This document shows positions 6,201 through 54,399 of a DNA stretch of 64,000 nucleotides, one piece after another. Location: the NCBI GenBank assembly GCA_964106645.2, contig OZ067046.1; one strand, given 5' to 3'. The position numbers and the translations under genes are program-made. The notes beneath the pieces were generated by a model. It saw only the letters and a program-made list of their open reading frames with translations, was not told where the DNA came from and ran no database searches. Origin of the DNA: Podarcis pityusensis (taxonomy: Eukaryota). Numbering within the stretch: the stretch's first letter is position 1; the number at the start of each line of letters is the position of its first letter.

Positions 6201-6837
6201 CTGTAAAAGAACAACAACAACAACAACAAATGTTTTAGGCTGTACAAGCATTGTACCATTTAAATTGTTTTCTATTGCCCTCCCCTCTGTGTGTGTATGC
6301 CTCTCACACACAAAGATTTATGCATTATGCAATCTGTTATAATTAGGGCAGCAACTTTTAACTGACGGTATATCGTCTGAATCCATGCTAGGGGTATGGA
6401 TTCATATAGGTTCCCCAACAGTTTGCATCTTTCATTTTTATTCCACAAGTTAAATACTTGTCTAATGCAGCTAAGGACCAAATAAATAAACACTGCTCAA
6501 ACTTTTGGACAGCTGTTAAATGCCTTTCTGCTCAGTGGAATTCTGTAATTCCATTACAGATAATTCAGGAAGGCTGCCTGGGGCCCAGGAAAGACTGAGA
6601 TGACCACTATCGATTGGCTTTACAACCAAGATAAGGATAAGTGGTACACAGGTGGCATACAGCTTCCTCCTTCCACATGTATTCCCACACTATTCCTTGG
6701 AAACTTTTGCGTCTTGTTTCCATGTGGTTAGTGACGTTCACATGGCCGTGCATCGCACTAATGACACAGTAACCATAAACACCATCATGTGTAGCCATGT
6801 GATCTGCTTTAACCAGATATAAAGAGACAAAGTATTG

Positions 6838-7080
6838 GCTGAGACTCCAATACTTTGGCCACCTTAAGAAAAGAGAAGACTCCCTGGAAAAGACCCTGAT
6901 GTTGGGAAAGATGGAGGGCAGAAGGAGAAGGGGACGACAGAGGACGAGATGGTTGGATAGTGTCCTCGAAACTACCAGCATGAGTTTGACTAAACTGCGG
7001 GAGGCAGTGGAAGACAGAAGTGCCTGGCGTGCTCTGGTCCATGGGGTCACAAAGAGTCGGACACGACTAAACAACAACAA
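6838..7080 (+). mobile_element. RTE-BovB LINE 3' fragment
   Basis: Encodes LEKTLMLGKMEGRRRRGRQRTRWLD, the BovB C-terminus; ends in a (CAA)n tail. Confidence 0.92.
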
Positions 7081-7273
7081 AGACACAGACGTTACCTGGA
7101 GTGGTGCTAACTACACCACATGGGGTTACTTCTAAATCTGCTTCAATCAGCCCCAGCAATAGCTAGAGCTCAACCTTTTAAAAAGCACTACTAGAATGGT
7201 CATGGGTTCATCACTCTGCCTCAACTTCCATATCGCAGTGATAGCCAGGAGCAGTTGCTGCCAATTCCAATTA

Positions 7274-7522
7274 CAGTACACCTCAGACTATATTACCCTT
7301 GGGTAACGTAAACTTCAGGTTGCGAAAACGGCAAACCTGGAAATGTGTTGCTGCGCGCACATGTGCAGAAGTGGTCTACCGCCCCATGCACATGCGCAGA
7401 AGCAGTCTACCACCCCACGCGCATGCGCAGAAGCAGTCTGCCACTTCTCCTCGGGTTGCAGAAACTTTGGAATCCGGCCGGACCTCCGGAACGGACCCCG
7501 TTCGCAACCAGAGGTACCACTG
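7274..7522. mobile_element. Tigger-like mariner MITE with internal ~31-bp repeats
   Basis: TA|CAGTACACCTC...GAGGTACCACTG|TA. Three GCACATG(T/C)GCAGAAG-type units inside. Confidence 0.7.
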
Positions 7523-17939: not shown

Positions 17940-18761
17940 TTAATAATAATAATAATAATAATAATTTATTATTTATACCCCACCCATCTGGATGGGTTTC
18001 CCCAGCCACTCTGGGCGGCTTCCAACAAAACACTAAAACACAAAAACCTATTAAACATTAAAAGCTTCCCTAAACAGGGCTGCCTTCAGATGTCTTCTAA
18101 AAGTTTGGTAGTTATTTTTCTCTTTGACATCTGGTGGGAGGGCGTTCCACAGGGCGGGCGCCACTACCGAGAAGGCCCTCTGCCTGGTTCCCTGTAACTT
18201 GGCTTCTCGCAGCGAGGGAACCGCCAGAAGGCCCTCGGTGCTGGACCTCAGTGTCTGGGCAGAACGATGGAGGTAGAGACGCTCCTTCAGGTATACTGGA
18301 CCAAGGCAGTTTAGGGCTTTAAAGGTCAGCACCAACACTTTGAATTGTGCTCGGAAACGTACTGGGAACCAGTGTAGGTCTTCCAAGACCGGTGTTATAT
18401 GGTCTTGGCGGCCGCTCCCAATCACCAGTCTAGCTACCGCATTCTGGAGTTTCCGGGTCACCTTCAAAGGTAGCCCCACATACAGCGCATTGCAGTAGTC
18501 TAAGCGGGAGATAACTAGAGCATGCACCACTCTGGCGAGACAGTCCGCGGGCAGGTAGGGTCTCAGCCTGCTTACCAGATGGAGCTGATAAACAGCTGCC
18601 CTGGACACAGAATTGACCTGCGCCTCCATGGACAGCTGTGAGTCCAGAATGACTCCCAGGCTGCGCACCTGGTCCTTCAGGGGCACAGTTACCCCATTCA
18701 GGACCAGGGAATCCTCCACACCTGCCCACCTCCTGTCCCCCAAAAACAGTACTTCTATCTT
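17940..18761 (-). mobile_element. L2 LINE, 5'-truncated (ORF2 C-terminus plus 3' UTR and (TTA)n tail)
   Basis: ORF 18051..18743 contains VRSLGVILDSQL, RLDYCNALY and LHWFPVRFR, typical of L2 ORF2. Confidence 0.93.
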
Positions 18762-23096: not shown

Positions 23097-23700
23097 CTGG
23101 AGGGGGAAAATAATTTGGTACTGAATGTCTGCACCCCTTCTCCACACAATTCTTCTTGACTTTAGCTACAGAGGTACTGTCCTCTCTACTACTGAAGTCA
23201 AGAACACAGAATTCAAAGCCAGCTGGCTCCTTTTTCCGGAGTGAAGGGTTGTGGAACCTGCAGTGCAATGAATGGTACAGTACAGCCCTGAGGCATCTCC
23301 TTACGCAGTCTTGATTAAGCAGATTTCTAAGTGTGCGGCTGCACTTATCGTTATGCTCCCAGGCTGTGCAGTAACCAGCAATTCTGCTTAGCCCAGAATT
23401 TCTGTATTGAGAGTTCCTGAACCCACAGTTATGGAACAGGAACAGCCAAATATTTTGTGTGTGCGTAAAAGCACGTAAGCCTAAATTAAGCATAACATGT
23501 CCCACCAACGGACATTTCTTTCTCTTCCAGCATGTGCTTCACCTGCCACTCAACTAGTATACAGAGCATATTCTAACCCTTATGCTGAAATAAAAGTCTT
23601 TGCAAACACTGACCACTTTCCCACATCACAAAAAAAGCTCAACACTGGAACATGATAGTTTCGTTCTAGAAGCTATTTTCAATGCCAGGCCCCACTTATA

Positions 23701-23922
23701 AGGTAAAGGACGAGTGCCAGAGCGCACAAAAATGCCATTTACTTTTCTGCCGCAGTGGTACCTATTTACCTACTTGCACAGGTGTGCTTTCGAACTGCTA
23801 GGTTGGCAGAAGCTGGGACAGAACAACGGGAGCTCACTCCGTCACATGGATTCAAACCGCCAACCTTCTGATCAGCAACCCAAGAGGCTTGGTGGTTTAG
23901 ACCACAGCGCCACCCGCAACCC
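23701..23922 (-). mobile_element. Sauria (Squam1) SINE, internally deleted
   Basis: Similar to the 28936 copy. Flanked by AGGCC(C/T)CACTTATA on both sides. Confidence 0.8.
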
Positions 23923-28407: not shown

Positions 28408-28935
28408 ATATAGAAGCCTTGAATCCTTTCAGGGCAACTAGGAAGGCAATTAACAAGCCCTATGCTTTAATGAGCAGCGCCTGATTAATATGCCTGCCTC
28501 TTCTCATGAAGAGGGAACAACTGCTGTATTTTATTCTGTGAACTGCCTCTGAGATTGTGTGGTGAAGAGTAGTATATAAATTTAATAAATAAAATTATAA
28601 CTGCTGATGGATCTACTGGGTCATTTTCCTCCATTACCCCATAACCTCAAGAATATTGGGTTAACTTGTATGCTGCTTTGTCTCACAGGTGCATAGGCAG
28701 CAAACAGAACCTTTTCTGTATTTATCTCCTGTTTAATACTGTCTTTATGTTTAGAATTGTGTTTGGGGTTTTTTAAAAAATATATTTTTAGCTCTTTATT
28801 TATAAATGTAACTGTTTTATATATGTTATGTTGTAAATCGTTTTGGGGTGCCTCACGGGAAGTGATTCATAAATGAAATAAATTATACTAACTTTGAAAA
28901 CATGTACATTAGATGCTTCTGTCTTAAACCAGATA

Positions 28936-29296
28936 AGGTAAAGGTAAAGGTACCCCTGCCCTTACAGGCCAGTCTTGCCAGACTCTAGGGTTGTGCGCTC
29001 ATCTCACTCTATAGGCCTGGAGCCAGCGCTGTCTGCAGACATTTCCGGGTCACGTGGCCAGCGTGACAAGCTGCATCTGGCGAGCCAGCGCAGCACACGG
29101 AACGCCATTTACCTTCCCGCTGGTAAGCGGTCCCTATTTATCTACTTGCACCCGGAGGTGCTTTCGAACTGCTAGGTTGGCAGGCACTGGGACCAAACGA
29201 CGGGAGCGCACCCCACCGCGGGGATTCGAACCACCGACCTTTCAATCGGCAAGTCCTAGGCGCTGAGGCTTTAACCCACAGCGCCACCCGCGTCCC
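28936..29296 (-). mobile_element. Sauria (Squam1) SINE, full length, 13-bp TSD CTTAAACCAGATA
   Basis: Minus strand begins GGGACGCGGGTGGCGCTGTGGGTTAAA and ends with an (ACCTTT)n tail. TSD at 28923-28935 and 29297-29309. Confidence 0.93.
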
Positions 29297-29551
29297 CTTA
29301 AACCAGATAGGCAACAACAAATACACTGTAATGTTATGTATAACTGCCACAAAGTTGTAAGGATCTTAATAGACAAAATGCCACCCTCTATTCTACTGTA
29401 ACAAATTTTACCAATGTTATTGTTTTTATAAAAAATGTAAAACAATTTCTCTACAAGTATTCCAGCTGATCTCCTAACTGTCCAAACTGGCCACAGAACG
29501 CCCAATGTTATAAAATATCACATCAGACCAAAAGCCAACAATCCTACAGTA

Positions 29552-30263
29552 ACAGATACCAGAGCCTGCAATAAACCCAGATGCCAACTTTGCTGCCACA
29601 TACACCCGGACAACACCATTACTGGCCCCAACAACATCACACATACCATCTCGGGACTATTCAATTGCTCATCATCTAACATTGTGTATGGCATCAAATG
29701 CCAACAGTGTCCTTCAGCTCTCTATATTGGACAAACAGGCCAAACCTTACGCCAAAGAATAAATGGACATAAATCTGACATCAAGAATCACAAAACAGAG
29801 AAACCAGTAGGAGAACACTTCAATCTCCCAGGACATTCTATACAAGATCTCAAAGTAGCTGTTTTACTACAAAGGAATTTCAGAAATAGACTGGAAAGAG
29901 AAGCTGCTGAATTGCAACTTATTACCAAACTTAAAACCATGGAGAGACCTGGTTTGAACAAAGACATTGGATTCTTATCCCATTATACATGACTAAGCCA
30001 TTTCTCACCTTCTCACCCCTTGCCTTTTCCTGTAAGACCTATTACAGTCGTTAAGAGTCGTCAGCAGGCTCATCTCAGCTATCTGCCAATCTCCCATTCC
30101 CACCACCCTTCTGAGTAATACCCCTCCCCACCTTCTCACTATATAGAAGGATCTGGCAACTTCTGTTTCAGTGTATCTGAAGAAGTGTGCTTGCACACGA
30201 AAGCTCATACCAAGAACTAACTTAGTTGGTCTTAAAGGTGCTACTGGAAGGATTTTTTTTATT
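29552..30263 (+). mobile_element. Penelope-like retroelement (Neptune-type) 3' part: Cys-rich linker, GIY-YIG endonuclease and pseudo-LTR
   Basis: Reads CNKPRCQLC...FNCSSSNIVYGIKC..CPSALYIGQTGQTLRQRINGH...GLNKD. Flanked by a 12-bp direct repeat AATCCTACAGTA (29540-29551, 30264-30275). Confidence 0.92.
30173..30210 (+). ncRNA. Minimal type I hammerhead ribozyme motif within the Penelope element
   Basis: GTAT-CTGAAGA-A-GTGTGC-TT-GCACAC-GAAA-GCTC^ATAC: catalytic core boxes, stem II hairpin, palindromic AGCT stem III and 4-bp stem I. Confidence 0.75.
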
Positions 30264-30594: not shown

Positions 30595-32076
30595 AGACAG
30601 GGTCTTCTCTGTTGTGGCACCAAGGTTATACAATTCCCTATTTAGAGAGCTCCACCTTCCATCCTCTTTGTTCAGGCACCACATTTAAGACACTTATTTC
30701 GGGGGGCCAAAAAGAAAATACAAATCACTCTCATTGCTGCTAGTTCCTCCCTCCTCCCCCACCTCCCGCCTCTGTTAGATCTTCATGCTTTAAAAAAAAA
30801 GAAAACTTGAAAGTTTTATCAATGTTTTATAAATCACAAAGACAGGTGATAAGCTACCTGACACCATGTCTAGTTATCATTAGCGCTATATTCTGTGAGG
30901 GTTTTATTAGCCATTATTGATGTTGCCACAGATTTATTCCTTTGGGAGCATATAAATAACCAACAAATAGTGAGAAAATGCCACCCTAACTATTACCTGC
31001 TTTTGCTGGCATTTGTCCCTTTAGTATTAGGTAAGCAATTTGTTCGGCACCACAGTCCACGGCAAAAAATATTTCATGAGCTGGAGTAGAAAGAACTGCC
31101 TTGCCAAAAATCCATTTAGTTAAGCACTGTTTCCAGAAGTGACTGGCTGGGTGCTTCTGGGCATGCAAGTAGATTATGAAAGGTTGTGGCTTTCCTTTCT
31201 TCTGCATAGACACATGTAGAAAATGACAACACTACATAAAAGCAAGGGGGGGAATGCACTGTGGTTCTCCTATTTTGAAAATAACTGGAAATGGAGAAAA
31301 CTTGAGGGGAAATGTATTAACTGTGTGAAGGAAAAAGCGAAGTCATATGAACACGATAAAACATTAATTCCACCTTCATTTGAAACATCATAAAGCATTC
31401 ACTCTGCAACCTTTTCAGAGGAACTACCAGAGCAGGCTGCCAGCTGGTATGCAGAAAGAAAGACCCAATGGCTTTAGTGGGGAAATATATGCAGGTATCT
31501 ATACTCTTGAGGAAATGAGCTGAGCAAAATAGACTCAAGCAAAAGATCTCTGGGATTATTGCTACCATAACATAGAGCCATTACGACAATAAATCCACAC
31601 TGCATTCATTATCAATATTGCTTCCTTCCCTATTAACAGGAAACGGCTTTTGTCAATATTAACAATGCCTCTTCCAGACAAAGATTAACTTACTGCTTTT
31701 GAAAGGGGAGGGGGAGAGAAACAAGCCATAAAATGGTAAGAGCAGAGAAACCCCGGCATTCTCGTAATGCGGCAAGCAACACCGCTCCAAGACTTCCAGA
31801 CAAAGTGCACACAGTGGGACCTAGACCAGGCCTCAGTGGAACAGGCAAGGTGTGTTATGAAAGCTTCAGCCAGCCAAGACTAGTTTTCCATGGAATCGTA
31901 AGCTGTGCCTTCTTCAGACTGGAAGGCAGCAAATCAGGCAAGGATTTATAGCTTTTGGCCCACAAGATGCAAGTATTCCTCCCTTTTTTTTAAAGTAAAA
32001 CTAAGAAGCATTGGGTGAGGGAGTTTATAGCTGGATTTCCTTTCCTAAAGTCCTACAATTTCTATAATCATATATA

Positions 32077-32432
32077 AAAGGTGAAGGTAAAGGGACCCCT
32101 GACCATTAGGTCCAGTCGTGACCGACTCTGGGGTTGCGGCGCTCATCTCGCTTTATTGGCCGAGGGAGCCGGCGTACAACTTCCGGGTCATGTGGCCAGC
32201 ATGACTAAGCTGCTTCTGGCGAACCTGAGCAGCGCACGGAAACGCCGCTTACCTTCCCGCTAGAACAGTACCTATTTGTCTACTTGCACTTTGATGTGCT
32301 TTCGAACTGCTAGGTTGGCAGGAGCAGAGACCGAGCAACGGGAGCTCACCCTGTCGCGGGGATTCAAACCGCCGACCTTCTGATCGGCAAGTCCTAGGCT
32401 CTGTGGTTTAACCACAGCGCCACCTGCGTCCC
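32077..32432 (-). mobile_element. Sauria (Squam1) SINE, full length
   Basis: Same structure as 28936. TSD ATAATCATA(T/C)ATA at 32064-32076 and 32433-32445. Confidence 0.93.
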
Positions 32433-32499
32433 ATAATCATACATACACTTGGAGGGTCCACTGTATATAATATAATCATACATGCACACATATTATATA

Positions 32500-32927
32500 C
32501 AGTGGACCCTCCAGATACCAATTAAATTCGTTCCGGCGGTCCATACTTAACCTGAAAAGTCTGCAACTGGAGGCACTATTTCTGGGCAAGTGCACTTCTG
32601 CACATGTGGCGAAAGCCATAAGTACAATGGTACCTCGGGTTAAGAACTTAATTCGTTCTGGAGGTCCGTTCTTAACCTGAAACTGTTCTTAACCTGAGGT
32701 ACCACTTTAGCTAATGGGGCCTCCCGCTGCTGCCGCGCCGCTGCTGCACAATTTCTGTTCTCATCCTGAAGCAAAGTTCTTAACCCAAGGTAATATTTCT
32801 GGGTTAGCGGAGTCTGTAACCTGTAGCACCTGTAACCCGAGGTACCACTGTATACACTTCCGGGTTTGCTGCATTCGCAACCTGAAAGTTACATATCCAG
32901 AGTGGTACGTAACTCAGGGGTCCACTG
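32500..32927. mobile_element. Mariner/Tigger-like MITE (CAGTGGACCC termini) with a nested Tigger-like MITE at 32625-32850
   Basis: Outer element TA|CAGTGGACCC...GGGTCCACTG|TA; inner element TA|CAATGGTACCTCGGG...CCCGAGGTACCACTG|TA. Confidence 0.82.
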
Positions 32928-35900: not shown

Positions 35901-37354
35901 AGTTATGAGACTTTATGGCCTTTCCACAGGCCTGCAATCCACACCCAGCATGCACCTTCAAAAAATCCAAGTGTCAGGATGCCATTTTAATTTCCCACAA
36001 TGCCTCAATGTAGTATTGGCTATGAGACATTGTGGAAAAGTTCACACTGGGCACGGGATAGATTTTATCATTTAAACCTTTCTTGAATTGAAAGTTGGAG
36101 GGTGGTATTGAGGGAGATTCCATGTTCAGATAAAACCTGGCGCAGCACAGGTAATTTCTCTACAGTGTAAGGGGCATCTGTGTCAAGGAAGTACATAGGC
36201 CCAAGAGATTCTTACCAGAATCAGACTTTTCCTGTGATGTAACAAGTCTTGGGATGCAAGTGGCGTCCATGGGGAAAGTTCTGAATAGGTCTTGTTGCCT
36301 TTAAAACGGATCCCATTTTTATTTTACTAAAATCAGACTATAGTATTTGAGTATGGTTTGCCCCACAGGTGCCACATGTTATCAATGCATCACTAACTTA
36401 ATTCTAAATAGTTTTAGAATTTCTCTGCAATGGAATCAAGATCACATAGGCCGCCCTCCACCTCCAAAAGCCCAACCTAAAACAAAAACAGCAACTTGAA
36501 CATTAACACTAGCAGTCACTACCTTGCCCCACACAAACACTTTCAGAAGAAGGTCACACAAGCATTGCTTCAGAAGCCACAAGCAACTTTGCAAGACGTT
36601 AAATGCAGTATTTTCCATCTCATTTATACCAACCTCGCAGATAATAAAACAAAAACAAACATTTCAGATAATCGCAGCATATGAGTAACTCTGGAACTGT
36701 TAGCTTCAAGAGCATTTCGCCTTGGAATGATTTAACAGCTCCAGAGTTTTATTTTGTGTAAACTCAAGCAAGCGTGCCAACATAAAAGAGAGAGAAAAAG
36801 AAAAGTTTTCCGTGCTGCTCATAATGATTCAGCAGTTGTTATTTGTATAGGCAAGACAGGTTCCCCTGCCTAGCCAGGTATAGTACCTTCTGCCACAAGA
36901 GACTTAGAAGCTTGGATATATATGTATGTATTCCGTTCCTGGAGCTTTTAGGAAACGATGCCAACGGAATCCAGGACTGCTGACGCCAAGGAAAACGGCT
37001 ACAAGCCTGTCAATTATCTATCAAACTCTTTGCAAAGGAAGGCTGGGAAGAGGAGGAGGAGGAGGAGGAGGAGGCGTGCGACTGCCTCAGCCCCATAAGC
37101 CATCCTTGTTTACGAGTCACCTATGCAGGGAGTTCACTGGTACCTGTTTGCTTAAGCACGACAGTCCACAGAAGAGGAAATCCTTCCATGGCTATTTGTA
37201 AACAGCGCTGGAAGGACGACACCTGCCTGCAGCTTGCACCAGCTCGACAACCTGCTGGGCAGCCCACCTTTTAAAAAAAAAAATCTCCCCCCCCCCATTT
37301 CCACAGCTGCTACAGCCAATTTTGTATTTGTGCAGGGGAGAGGGGGCCACTTAC

Positions 37355-37970
37355 CTCCGTGAACATGTCTTACTGCCTTCCTACATGGCAAGAGAGGTTT
37401 CCTGTTTTCATACATTCCCTTGTCAGCTGTAATCAGTGTCAATAAGGTTAGCGTCTTCTGTGCTAGCGGCTGGAGTGTCGGCCCTGACAGGAAAGAACTT
37501 TTTAATCTCTTCCCTCACACTGAGCCATGCGAAGCCAGCGAGCGCTCCCAGGCATAACTCCCTTGGCTCCTCTCCTAAAAAACGCTCCCTCAAGTGCGCG
37601 GTTGCTAAGCAATATCTGCCGTGCTCTGTGTGTGTGTGAGAGTGAATGTGCGCACCCCCAACACACACACACACACGTTCCCCGCCGCTCCTCTTCGTAT
37701 CGTTTGAAATTGGCAACATCTGTCCCTTTGGCGGTTCTGACTTATGCAAAGGACCGTGTGCGGAGTTTTTATTTTTTAAAAAATAAAAGCAGAGGAAAAG
37801 CGCACGCCGTTTCATCTGGCCTCCTCTAATGGCTGGTTTTGTTAATATTTCATTTCCAGTTTTAAAACAAAAGCAGCGGCCGCTGCGCCCAGAGGAAGAG
37901 CAAGGAGGGAAAAGCAAAGCCCCGTAAAGTCCGGTGGGAATCGCCGACAAAAGCACATACAGCAAAGTAG
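37355..37970 (-). promoter_or_regulatory. Intronic CpG-rich island; candidate internal AFF1 promoter and alternative first exon ending ATG TTC ACG GAG|gtaagt
   Basis: Roughly 30 CpGs counted by eye in about 520 bp (37441-37960) of sequence with no recognisable repeat, against a CpG-poor intron. Consensus donor GAG|GTAAGT at 37355/37354. ATG at 37366 is in phase 0 with the next AFF1 exon. Confidence 0.6.
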
Positions 37971-38248
37971 TTTATTTATTTTTCTTTGCTCACTCTTTCT
38001 GGCTTGGGTTTGTTTATTTAAAGACGACTTTTTCCACTCTCTCTCGTTTTCAACTTTTCTATTGCTACCTCAGATAATTAAGTAGCTGTATAAATAAAGC
38101 GGCTACAAGTGACTACAATAAATATATTAATGGCACTGGATTTCATTTACTGTATTAAACTCAGCTTGTTTTTGTTTTTAAAAGTGTCCGCTGCGACTGA
38201 TAGCCGTTTCGCCTTAAAAAATAATAATGTTGTGTCAGTGTGTCGTTA

Positions 38249-41304: not shown

Positions 41305-42718
41305 ATGTCTTGAAAACACAGACATTTTGGACCTAGAAAGTTGTAACAATGTATTTGGATGGCATGCATATCTGTGGTATGACAAGGTCAAAGCGCATAA
41401 AGCATTTAAAAACCATATTGTCAGGAAAGCATTGTTTAATGTTTGGATAAGATACAAGGATTTATTGGAAAACAAAACCCCAAGGTGGCTGTCACCGATG
41501 GAAGCGAAAGCTGTGAAAAGGCTCAATATGGAGGCCAATTGGCCGAAATATTGGGAAATTTTGGAACAAGATGGAGATAGACTGAAACTGCAGAGTTTTG
41601 AGAAACTAAAAAATAAAGTGCGAGACTGGCTTCATTATTATCAGATAATGGAGGCATATAATTTGGACAAGAAAATTGGCTTCCAGATGGAAAAATCAAA
41701 ATTAGAAACAGAACTGTTAGAACCCAAAACTAAGATTTTGTCAAAGATGTATAACTTGCTGTTGAAATGGAATACTCAGGATGAAACGGTGAAATCTGCT
41801 ATGATTAAATAGGCACAAGATGTTGGACATAATATTATGTTTGCTGACTGGGAACAGTTATGGACCACAGGTATGAAGTTTACGGCATGTAATGCCTTAA
41901 GAGAGAATATTATGAAAATGATATACAGGTGGTACATAACCCCAGTCAAGCTTGCAAAAATCTACCATTTGCCCGATAACAAATGTTGGAAATGTAAAGA
42001 AACTGAAGGTACATTCTTTCACCTTTGGTGGACATGCCCAAGGATTAAGGCTTTCTGGGAAATGATATATAATGAACTGAAAAAGGTATTTAAATATACC
42101 TTCTTGAAGAAACCAGAGGCCTTTCTCCTGGGCATAGTCGGCCAATTGGTGCCAAAGAAGGATAGAACCTTTTTTATGTATGCCACAACAGCAGCAAGAA
42201 TACTCATTGCAAAGTATTGGAAGACACAAGATCTACCCACTCTGGAAGAATGGCAGATGAAGCTGATGGACTATATGGAACTGGCAGAAATGACTGGCAG
42301 AATCCGAGACCAGGGAGAAGAGTCGGTGGAAGAAGATTGGAAGAAATTCAAAGACTATCTACAGAATTATTGTAAAATTAATGAATGTTAGAATGATGTT
42401 GGATAGAAATTAAGTGGTTTCCAGCTGTAATGCTTTAAGGGATTATGAAAAATGGGCTGTTAATAGGTAAAAATTTAACGTTACTATTTTAAGACTAAAG
42501 ATTAGGATAAATAAAGAGGGTAAGGATTTGCTGAACCAACAAATTGAACTGGAATACAAAAAAGGGAGGTATGAGGAGGTCCGGGAAACAAGCTAAAGGA
42601 AAACAAGCAATGGAAAATCTGTGTGTTTTTAACTATTTTTATTTTGTATTTTTGTTATTTTTTTCATTTTTATTGTAATACTTTTAAAAAGCTTAATAAA
42701 TATCTTACAGAAAAAAAC
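41305..42718 (+). mobile_element. L1-clade LINE, 5'-truncated, apparently young, flanked by a 132-bp direct duplication
   Basis: ORFs 41327..41812 and 41837..42391 are in the same frame, separated by one TAG. Contains the Cys motif CWKC..EGTFFHLWWTC and AARILIAKYWK; ends with AATAAA and an A tail. Confidence 0.92.
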
Positions 42719-47600: not shown

Positions 47601-47718
47601 TATATTGGTTAAACCTAATTATTATTATGGATCGCCCTAAACCAAAACAGGTAAGTATGAATAAATCACTTTACTGCACCAAAGTAAAACCAAAACAAAG
47701 AGCAGCAATTCCACTAAC

Positions 47719-48615
47719 CTCAGTCGCTTCAACAGGTATTTTCAATTTGGGCAAGCTGGGCAAGTTGGGCTTGACGTTTGTTTTCACGTTTGCTATTTTC
47801 CCATAGGACTGTTCGTGGTATTCCTCAGGAAGCGGCTTGAGCTCCGGCGACTCGTCCGGAGCTTGATCTTGACCATCCATTGGCCTCACGTAGGCAGTCG
47901 GTTTCTGCTGTATTGCACTGGTTTTTGATGACAACGATGCAGGGAAAGTCTGGGAGGAAGGCTGGGCAGCAACGGCTACAGGAGCATTCAAGCTGTCCTG
48001 GGTTTCATTCTCACGTGTTCCAGCCACCAGCTCCAGAGAAGGGGAGCTATTCTGCCCGTGGTTTTTGTTGGTGCTGCCGAGAGACCTGGAATTGACACGT
48101 TGGCTGGAATGTAGAGGCGACAAGGGAGCTACAGGGGAAGACAACGAGGACAGCAAGGGAGAAAGTTCCAAAAGGGAGGGCTGCAGCTTGCGGGCTTCTT
48201 CAATGCATCTTTCATTCTTCTTCTGGCTTCTGCTGCTCTGGCCTTCTTGAGTCTTGCGGCTCTGCTCTTGACTTCGCCTCTGGTTGCTGGGCAGCCCACC
48301 GCTTTGTGAGGCCAGTTCTATCCTTGAGTGAATTTTTTGGTGGTGCAGAGAGTTGCCCGCAGAGGGAGCACCTGAAGCAATGGGTCCCAAGGGCTTGCGG
48401 TGATGGCTACTGTTCTGGAATGAGGCAGGTACCACGCTGCTGGTCTTTTCAGGCAAGAGTGGACGATCTGGCTTGCGCTGAGGGATCAGAGACATGACGC
48501 TTGTGGGGATCCCTATGAAATCTTGCTGAGACTTGATGGCGATAAGCTCCTTCATCTCTTCGTAATTGCCAAACATCTTCTGAATCCGGCTGGATAGCTC
48601 ATCTGCTTTGTTGTT
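47719..48615 (-). CDS. AFF1: AFF1 large coding exon (897 nt): NNKADELSSRIQKMFGNYEEM...QQKPTAYVRPMDGQDQAP...KLKIPVEATE, including the SIAH-binding PxAxVxP degron
   Basis: Within ORF 47671..48636. Contains the AFF motifs DELSSRIQ.M.GNYEE and KPTAYVRPMDGQDQAP.ESPELKP. Acceptor tttcag|AAC, donor GAG|gttagt; phase 0-0. Confidence 0.97.
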
Positions 48616-49414: not shown

Positions 49415-49535
49415 CTTGTAAGGTTCTCCAAAGAGAGGGATATCAGCAGGGAATGATTCTTTCTCCTGGAGAGCTTCCTGATTCCTCCTCTCTTTTGCTT
49501 GGATGCGGAGCAAATTTCTCTCTTCATTGTACAAG
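49415..49535 (-). CDS. AFF1: AFF1 coding exon (121 nt): (S)LYNEERNLLRIQAKERRNQEALQEKESFPADIPLFGEPYK, the N-terminal cyclin T1/P-TEFb-binding region
   Basis: Translation matches the AF4-family N-terminus (RNLLRI..KERRNQE..LFGEPYK). Acceptor cacag| follows a pyrimidine tract; donor AAG|gtat. Phase 2 in, phase 0 out. The ORF-track start is a TTG, not a real ATG. Confidence 0.96.
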
Positions 49536-51983: not shown

Positions 51984-52362
51984 AAAGGTAAAGGACCCCT
52001 GGACGGTTAGGTCCAGTCAAAGGCGACTATGGGCTCATCTCGTGGCGCTCATCTCACTTTCAGGCCGAGTGAGCCGGCATTTGTCCACAGACAGCTTTCC
52101 GGTTCATGTGGCCAGCATAACTAAACCGCTTCTGGCACAACGGAACACTGTGATGGAAACCAAAGAGCCCAGAAATTCCGTTTACCTTCCTGCCGAAGTG
52201 GTACCTATTTATCTACTTGCACTGGCGTGCTTTCGAACTGCTGGGTTGGCAGGAGCTGGGGCAGAGCAACGGGAGCTCACCCCATTGCGGGCATTTGAAC
52301 CGCCGACCCTCTGATCAGCAAGCCCAAGAGGCTCGGTGGTTTAGACACAGTGCCACCTGCGC
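51984..52362 (-). mobile_element. Sauria (Squam1) SINE
   Basis: Similar to the 28936 and 32077 copies; (ACCTTT) tail. Confidence 0.88.
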
Positions 52363-53188: not shown

Positions 53189-53710
53189 CATCTTAAAAAC
53201 ATCTTAAAAAGCAGAGACATCTTAAAAAGCAGCATCTAAAAAAACAGAGACATCACCTTGCCTACAAAGGTCCGTATAGTAAAGCTATGGTTTTCCCAGT
53301 AGTGATGTATGGAAGTGAGAGCTGGACCATAAAGAAGGCTGATCACCGAACAATTGATGCTTTTGAATTATGGTGCTGGAGGAGACTCTTGAGAGTCCCA
53401 TGGACTGCAAGAAGATCAAACCTATCCATTCTGAAGGAAATCAGCCCTGGGTGCTCACTGGAAGGACAGATCGTGAAGCTGAGGCTCCAATACTTTGGCG
53501 ACCTCATGAGAAGAGAAGACTCCCTGGAAAAGACCCTGATGTTGGGGAAGATGGAGGGCACAAGGAGAAGGGGACGACAGAGGATGAGATGGTTGGACAG
53601 TGTTCTCGAAGCTACCAGCATGAGTTTGACCAAACTGCAGGAGGCAGTAGAAGACAGGAGTGCCTGTCCATGGGGTCACGGAGAGTCGAACACGACTAAA
53701 CAACAACAAC
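53189..53710 (+). mobile_element. RTE-BovB LINE 3' fragment, 9-bp TSD AATGAAAAG
   Basis: ORF 53287..53715 reads MVFPVVMYGSESWTIKKA...IDAFELWCWRRLLRVPWTARRSN. (CAA)n tail. TSD at 53180-53188 and 53711-53719. Confidence 0.95.
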
Positions 53711-54399
53711 AATGAAAAGGGCCTTTACACCTGGTTTTCACTCGGGGAAAGATAACAGTAATGTAACTAGGGTGGTGCTGACAGGAGTGTATCTGCTCAG
53801 GTTGAAGCCTCAAGCTTCCCTCTTAGCATCGCAAATTGGCAATTTTGCACTGACAGCAGAAGCTACCATTTGCAGAACGCACCTGGCAAGGTCTAGACCT
53901 AACAACCACCTCCCCCTTTTGCCTCATTCCCCGCACTGGACTGCTCGGTCCCTTCCTATCAATACTGCACTGACTGGCCTTGCATTCAGTTTTGATCCGG
54001 TCCTCCTTTTCCTCCCTGCCGAGAAGCCCTGCATTGCCTCCACTGCAAGATGGAGGCTGTAAGCCTTCCTATGCCGCCGACACCTGCGTCTTTTGCCTTC
54101 CACACAGCTACGCTGGGAATAGGAAAAATTTGGAAGTTTTTCCCTGACGTATTTATCCTGCTCAAGCGTAGCCACAGCTCTTGCAGCACTTAAGTTCAAG
54201 AGGTCCCCACACCAGGAAACTCCCCTTCTTTTCCCACTGCCATGTCACTGCTTTCAAGAGGATACAAGAGGAACGGAAAGAGTTAAGAAACTTAAGGTGG
54301 CAGCGATGCTGAAACTCAGAGGCCTCTGGAATCATCACGCTTGTGTTGTGACAAAGCAAGTTAGTTGCTGGCGTGTTATTGGGAAACAGAAGCTCTGCT

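Follow-up and report, generated by a model that had tools for sequence, protein, structure and literature searches.

Gene context and a candidate first exon within AFF1

The 64,000-nucleotide stretch of Podarcis pityusensis DNA analysed here (contig OZ067046.1, hereafter the window) holds part of AFF1 on its minus strand, a gene which encodes a scaffold of the super elongation complex and is the commonest fusion partner of KMT2A. The AFF1 exons discussed below are listed in Table 1, two of them, of 897 and 45 nucleotides (nt), being separated by an intron of 37.4 kb. In Anolis and Podarcis the complete gene extends over 140-146 kb. The peptide of the 897-nt exon (exon 3) shares about 97% of its residues with the AFF1 proteins of Podarcis muralis, P. 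raffonei, Lacerta agilis and Zootoca vivipara and is identical to none of these. Within the intron, some 10 kb downstream of the 897-nt exon and at the 3' edge of a CpG-rich block, lies a candidate alternative first exon which would be joined to the 45-nt exon. A sequence-only reading of the window had proposed this exon, together with an internal promoter, as the origin of a shortened AFF1 protein.

Table 1. Positions of AFF1 exons, the alternative first exon and associated elements in the window
Feature	Position	Strand	Remarks
121-nt exon	49535-49415	-	Encodes LYNEERNLLRIQAKERRNQEALQEKESFPADIPLFGEPYK; bypassed by the predicted short isoform
897-nt exon	48615-47719	-	Ends ...VEATE|gttagt, phase 0; bypassed by the predicted short isoform
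CpG-rich non-repeat block, putative internal promoter	37401-38100		GC 0.46, CpG observed/expected 0.83
Upstream open reading frame, 13 codons	37411-37370	-	MKTGNLSCHVGRQ followed by a stop 3 nt before the MFTE ATG
Untranslated leader, minimum extent	37367-37411	-	Based on the tblastn match of Anolis X5
Alternative first exon, coding part	37366-37355	-	ATG TTC ACG GAG = MFTE, ends in phase 0; read directly
Splice donor GTAAGT (GAG|GTAAGT)	37354-37349	-	8 of 9 positions agree with the donor consensus
45-nt exon (exon 4, human numbering)	10350-10306	-	Encodes QSFSNEVHCVEEILK
87-nt exon	8726-8640	-	EMTHSWPPP...; remainder of the ELL-binding segment
Two small exons	near 7.8 kb and 6.2 kb

On the minus strand the end of the candidate exon reads ...gcagtaagac ATG TTC ACG GAG|gtaagtggcc, with the ATG at 37366-37364 and the final exon base at 37355. 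The consensus donor and the purine at -3 of the ATG, both pointed out in the sequence-only reading, are thus present in the letters themselves, the base at -3 being G and that at +4 being T. The 45-nt exon is preceded by a strong pyrimidine tract and cag and begins at a codon boundary, and the 897-nt exon also ends in phase 0, which bears out the phase-0 splice proposed for the candidate. The join 37355->10350 is in frame and gives MFTE followed by the peptide of the 45-nt exon, MFTEQSFSNEVHCVEEILK being the N-terminal peptide expected from this start. The 45-nt exon, which serves as the acceptor, codes for the start of the ELL-binding helix. The 87-nt exon, whose peptide is 100% identical to residues 20-48 of the P. 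muralis protein P0242, supplies the methionine with which MTHSW-start isoforms of other species begin.

Of the 12 GT[AG]AGT sites which the 37.4-kb intron has on its minus strand, 6 are preceded by an ATG in phase and without an intervening stop, so that ATG, donor and phase fit alone do not place the candidate beyond chance. It is raised above chance by its position at the edge of the sole non-repeat CpG block and, above all, by the orthologous protein models described below. A coding cassette exon between the 897-nt and 45-nt exons was also considered and was rejected on account of in-frame stops, namely a TAG after the acceptor-like site at 37484 and the TAA at 37372-37370. It was also observed that the 897-nt exon, ending ACT GAG|GTTAGT (47711-47725, minus strand), and the alternative exon, ending ACG GAG|GTAAGT (37349-37360, minus strand), both finish with ..TE in the same junction context; this common ending may reflect chance or a constraint from the common acceptor exon.

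Orthologous models of the alternative first exon

The 897-nt exon was used to find AFF1 proteins, after which residues 342-900 of a snake full-length AFF1 (P0003) served as the query. Proteins of 0.55-1.75 times the length of P0003 were collected, the members of 30 clusters were listed and their N-termini were read. Seven sauropsid NCBI models carry MFTE followed by the 45-nt-exon peptide, with the pattern MFTE + Q[ST][FY][SP]N[ED].. at their junction. The first match found was that of the gecko Euleptes europaea (P0137, XP_056711712.1, 878 amino acids), which starts MFTEQSFSNEVHCVEEILKEMTHSW, as does isoform X8 of the close relative P. muralis (P0242, XP_077789943.1, 891 amino acids), of which residues 4-48 match the exons of the window. 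The other models are Crotalus tigris X6 (P0349, XP_039217123.1, 880 amino acids), Python bivittatus X6 (P0361, XP_025022704.1, 898 amino acids), Alligator mississippiensis X6 (P0385, XP_059578258.1, 867 amino acids), Columba livia X4 (P0484, XP_064917879.1, 865 amino acids) and Anolis carolinensis X5 (P0261, XP_062837924.1, 893 amino acids). The annotation therefore covers a lacertid, a gecko, an anole, two snakes, an alligator and a pigeon, that is, both lepidosaurs and archosaurs, with divergence times among the seven species of up to about 280 million years by our estimate. All share with the predicted isoform the same N-terminus, the same junction with the 45-nt exon and the same loss of some 345 N-terminal residues.

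The Anolis model enters the same exon from an in-frame upstream ATG, giving MKTGNLSCHVGRRQD-MFTE, and its N-terminus begins MKTGNLSCHVGRRQDMFTEQSF... (also written MKTGNLSCHVGRRQDMFTE). In a tblastn search within the window, its first 21 residues aligned without gaps to 37411-37349 with 18 of 21 identical (E 1.5e-8), and MKTGNLSCHVGRRQD matched 37411-37367 at 13 of 15 residues, again without gaps. This gapless match indicates that the exon is conserved beyond its four codons, from Iguania to Lacertidae. The upstream in-frame ATG is open in Anolis, whereas in the window the frame is closed by the TAA at 37372-37370, which leaves an upstream open reading frame.

The alternative exon joined to the 45-nt exon, with loss of everything encoded upstream, is thus matched exactly by seven sauropsid proteins, and the conservation of the ATG and of the frame to the donor that the sequence-only reading called for is seen at the protein level in the identity of MFTE throughout. 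As judged from these predicted sequences, it is confirmed that the MFTE exon is a real, conserved alternative first exon of AFF1. Neither the exon nor the isoform is a discovery, both being already present in public annotation of one close relative and six more distant species. That an ATG and a donor have merely come together by chance in unique CpG-rich intron DNA, with no exon there, is extremely improbable: such pairings do occur at half of the consensus donors in the intron, but chance would not account for an exact MFTE match in seven orthologous models together with a 21-residue gapless Anolis match at the same place.

A search for transcript fragments with residues 1-200 of P0242 returned mammalian, bird and fish fragments only and no squamate transcript. 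Two of the Logan fragments, P0514 and P0515, are AFF1 sequences which start within or just before the Ser-rich region; they look primate, possibly human.

Predicted product of the short isoform

By analogy with P0242, the predicted product would be about 890 amino acids long. The domains past the ELL-binding segment were read from that ortholog, the downstream exons being outside the window; Pfam assigns to it the AF-4 family profile at profile positions 338-513 only (residues 3-178), AF4_int at 420-434 and AFF4_CHD at 626-889.

Alignment with P0065, which we take to be AFF4, divides the cyclin T1-binding segment between two exons. The sequence-only reading had assigned this segment to the 121-nt exon, which holds for about the first nine residues (..PLFGEPYK), found at the end of that exon; the remaining 27 or so open the 897-nt exon. 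In AFF4 the segment comprises residues 32-67 (PMC5290273). The SIAH degron was found where it had been placed, in the 897-nt exon, as KPTAYVRPM at 47904-47878 (minus strand), and is identical to the degron of AFF3 (PMC11137988). As the exons encoding these two segments (49415-49535 and 47719-48615) precede the alternative exon, the short isoform is predicted to lack the N-terminal homology region, including the segment that binds cyclin T1 (P-TEFb), and also the degron.

The isoform would keep the full ELL-binding segment, the Ser-rich region, the AF9/ENL-binding motif and the C-terminal homology (dimerisation) domain. In AFF4 the ELL-binding segment has a helix alpha1 at 315-324 and an ordered part at 314-349 (PMC5290273). 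The helix corresponds to CVEEILKEMT in the window, while HCVEEILK and the following 27 residues correspond to the ordered ELLBow, in agreement with the earlier placing of the start of this segment at CVEEILKEM.

Should these motifs behave as mapped elsewhere, the short protein would escape SIAH-dependent turnover, could associate with ELL1/2 and ENL/AF9 and could form dimers with full-length AFF1 or AFF4. It could not bring P-TEFb itself, and because the P-TEFb-binding segment is predicted to be absent it might function as a scaffold free of P-TEFb or compete with the full-length protein. The model of a stable, ELL- and ENL/AF9-binding but P-TEFb-free protein is a reasonable deduction from the mapped motifs.

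Other annotated isoforms affect the same exon. In isoform 4-T4 of Vipera latastei (P0328, 927 amino acids) the entire 897-nt exon is skipped (..PLFGAPYK|QSYSNEAHCVEEILK) and the degron is lost with it. In Alligator, isoforms C and B (P0384 and P0387) represent annotated routes by which the 897-nt exon is altered, the stretch from ..LGNYEE to KPTAYVRPM being removed in isoform C with the degron kept.

Leader sequence and choice of start codon

The 13-codon upstream open reading frame begins at the ATG at 37411, and further upstream ATGs lie at 37415 (out of frame) and 37386. In A. carolinensis the stretch corresponding to this reading frame is open and annotated as an N-terminal extension. Its first 12 residues are identical in both lineages, which points to constraint on either the peptide or the nucleotides. 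Because these upstream ATGs and the short reading frame precede it, translation from the MFTE ATG may be weak, reinitiation-dependent or shifted to MTHSW.

Short AFF1 isoforms which start with MTHSW (848-878 amino acids) are annotated in many species (P0235, P0248, P0338, P0364, P0298, P0314 and P0451), the models being Lacerta agilis X7, Pogona X7, Pantherophis X7, Python X7, Dermochelys X8, Eumetopias and Nycticebus X4. The human 848-amino-acid RefSeq isoform presumably belongs here as well. These isoforms are likewise N-terminally truncated forms of AFF1 without the P-TEFb-binding segment and the degron. However, they begin 20 residues further in and are without QSFSNEVHCVEEILK, and thus without the V, I and L of the first ELLBow helix. 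In AFF4, V316, I319 and L320 are needed for ELL binding, and the change L320D blocked binding of both ELL1 and ELL2 in cells (PMC5290273). As the MTHSW form is without the residues matching these three, the choice of start codon would decide whether the short protein can bind ELL.

It is unlikely, in our judgement, that the exon, though real, acts chiefly as a non-coding leader, with ribosomes mostly starting at MTHSW in the 87-nt exon and the main product being the form of about 870 amino acids seen in Lacerta agilis, Pogona, Pantherophis, Dermochelys and mammals, which is also without the first ELL-binding helix. The wide annotation of MTHSW-start isoforms is in keeping with such a role, as are the three ATGs at 37415, 37411 and 37386 ahead of an MFTE ATG that itself has T at +4, and the functional difference expected between the two starts from the AFF4 residues named above adds to it. 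Constraint on the splice site could also explain part of the identity of MFTE. On the other hand, the stop of the upstream reading frame 3 nt before the main ATG permits reinitiation, and the identity of MFTE and the retention of the frame to the donor in seven species, from lepidosaurs to archosaurs, would be unexpected at the end of a purely non-coding exon.

The CpG-rich block as a putative internal promoter

The region 37349-37970 has a GC content of 0.494 and contains 30 CpG dinucleotides, with a CpG observed/expected ratio of 0.80. Across 622-bp windows the mean ratio was 0.31 (standard deviation 0.15) and just 0.9% of them reach 0.80. The region has no copy elsewhere in the stretch except for CA microsatellites, and its identification as a repeat was rejected for this reason; the description of a CpG-dense block with no recognisable repeat was therefore upheld. 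It is the sole non-repeat CpG-rich block in the 37.4-kb intron. A CpG island is usually defined by a length of at least 200 bp, a GC content of at least 0.5 and an observed/expected ratio of at least 0.6. The sub-block 37401-37700 (GC 0.53, ratio 0.74) satisfies this definition, with the wider block 37401-38100 having a GC content of 0.46 only. A near-palindromic sequence, ATTGCTTAGCAAC, is present within the block at 37589-37601 (minus strand) and resembles an RFX X-box.

The CpG-island-like block at 37.4-38.1 kb most likely serves as a gene-internal promoter. We infer this role from the composition of the block and from the orthologous first-exon models, and the transcript in this species and its start are inferred in the same way. 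A transcript would start in or near the block, its first exon would end at 37355 and be spliced to 10350, and translation from the ATG at 37366 would yield MFTE followed by normal AFF1 sequence from the 45-nt exon onward. Taken together, positions 37355-37411 and some bases beyond on the minus strand very probably form a conserved alternative first exon of AFF1, with the adjoining CpG block as its most likely promoter.

A number of points weigh against this reading. The orthologous proteins are computed gene models, which we take to rest on transcript alignments as is general for the NCBI pipeline, and conservation was read at the protein level. Between three and five ATGs would precede the MFTE ATG if the transcript started above 37415, and several species, including the lacertid L. 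agilis, are annotated solely with the MTHSW-start short isoform. There are also acceptor-like sites upstream of the exon, ttctttcctgtcag|G at 37484 and gattacag|C near 37430, so a longer leader begun elsewhere could contain the exon as an internal one, in which case the CpG block need not be the promoter. Finally, no paper describing a natural AFF1 isoform truncated at its N-terminus, or a promoter in AFF1 intron 3, was found in the library searched. This silence of the literature, along with a GC content of just 0.42-0.53 across the block, would suit a block that acts as an enhancer within the intron or as promoter for a different transcript, perhaps one from the plus strand, with MFTE transcripts being rare and functionless by-products. 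We regard this as more doubtful still than a mainly non-coding leader, since the same exon, frame and peptide are annotated independently in seven species and noise would not preserve an ATG, a frame and a donor.

Other features of the window

A second unique CpG-rich block, matching no repeat in the window, was detected at 7200-7500 (GC 0.47-0.54, observed/expected ratio 0.74-0.91). It is intronic, being flanked by the two small exons near 7.8 kb and 6.2 kb, and the models of some birds and snakes begin a short way downstream, for example those of Buteo (MLNVQKGCGRMLQADLQLSD..) and Crotalus horridus (MTSLPFRTLHKDLEISD..). A further regulatory element or start site may be present here.

CpG-rich copies of a dispersed repeat were located at 28600-29700, 31900-32900, 23700-23900 and 52000-52360, being 75-81% identical to each other. 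The first of these is adjoined by an open reading frame at 29684-29992 (plus strand) with GIY-YIG-like sequence, which we presume to be typical of Penelope-like elements. Long open reading frames at 18051-18743 (minus), 41327-42391 (plus), 53287-53715 (plus) and 6607-7086 (minus) were judged by eye to be fragments of the reverse transcriptase or C-terminus of long interspersed nuclear elements and antisense BovB-like tails. Such pieces are ordinary interspersed repeats for a squamate intron. A scan for bacterial promoters and terminators was discarded as irrelevant to a vertebrate gene.

Comparison with known systems

The natural isoform begins exactly where most KMT2A fusions do. It is conserved across reptiles and birds and offers a ready-made test of the C-terminal part of AFF1 alone. 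It is also predicted to be without the SIAH degron, the loss of which causes disease in AFF3 and AFF4. It is possible, and is put forward here only tentatively, that a promoter in the breakpoint-cluster intron of AFF1, predating the split of lepidosaurs and archosaurs, yields a degron-less, P-TEFb-free and ELL-competent AFF1 which the cell employs as a stable scaffold or to restrain the super elongation complex. In that case the KMT2A::AFF1 fusion would mimic an isoform that occurs naturally instead of being a new kind of truncation, and the MFTE ATG would decide the inclusion of the first ELL helix, unlike the MTHSW forms.

The degron mutants of AFF4 (CHOPS) and AFF3 (KINSSHIP) escape SIAH and accumulate (PMC11137988). 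These proteins are affected in the same degron, KPTAYVRPM, that the short AFF1 isoform is predicted to be without. They are, however, disease-causing point mutants which retain the P-TEFb-binding N-terminus, whereas the short AFF1 would be a natural isoform with neither.

A gene-internal promoter has been experimentally shown in intron 11 of KMT2A/MLL (Scharf et al., 2007, as cited in PMC10291325). As described in the citing paper, it likewise sits where the breakpoints of a translocation partner gene cluster, and its product is truncated at the N-terminus. It belongs to another gene and was shown by experiment, whereas the AFF1 promoter is proposed from CpG content and first-exon annotation.

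The claim that KMT2A-AFF1 fusions break in this part of AFF1 finds support in the literature, as intron 3 of AFF1 is part of the breakpoint cluster region (PMC10291325). Premature transcript termination has also been reported in this intron and is distinct from an internal promoter (PMC10291325). The typical KMT2A::AFF1 (MLL-AF4) fusion keeps AFF1 from the 45-nt exon on, which is the same C-terminal portion as that of the short isoform, and, as predicted for the isoform, it is without the degron and without the cyclin T1-binding segment of AFF1. The two differ in what stands in front of this portion: the fusion has the N-terminus of KMT2A, with its chromatin targeting, and the KMT2A promoter, whereas the natural isoform would have MFTE alone.

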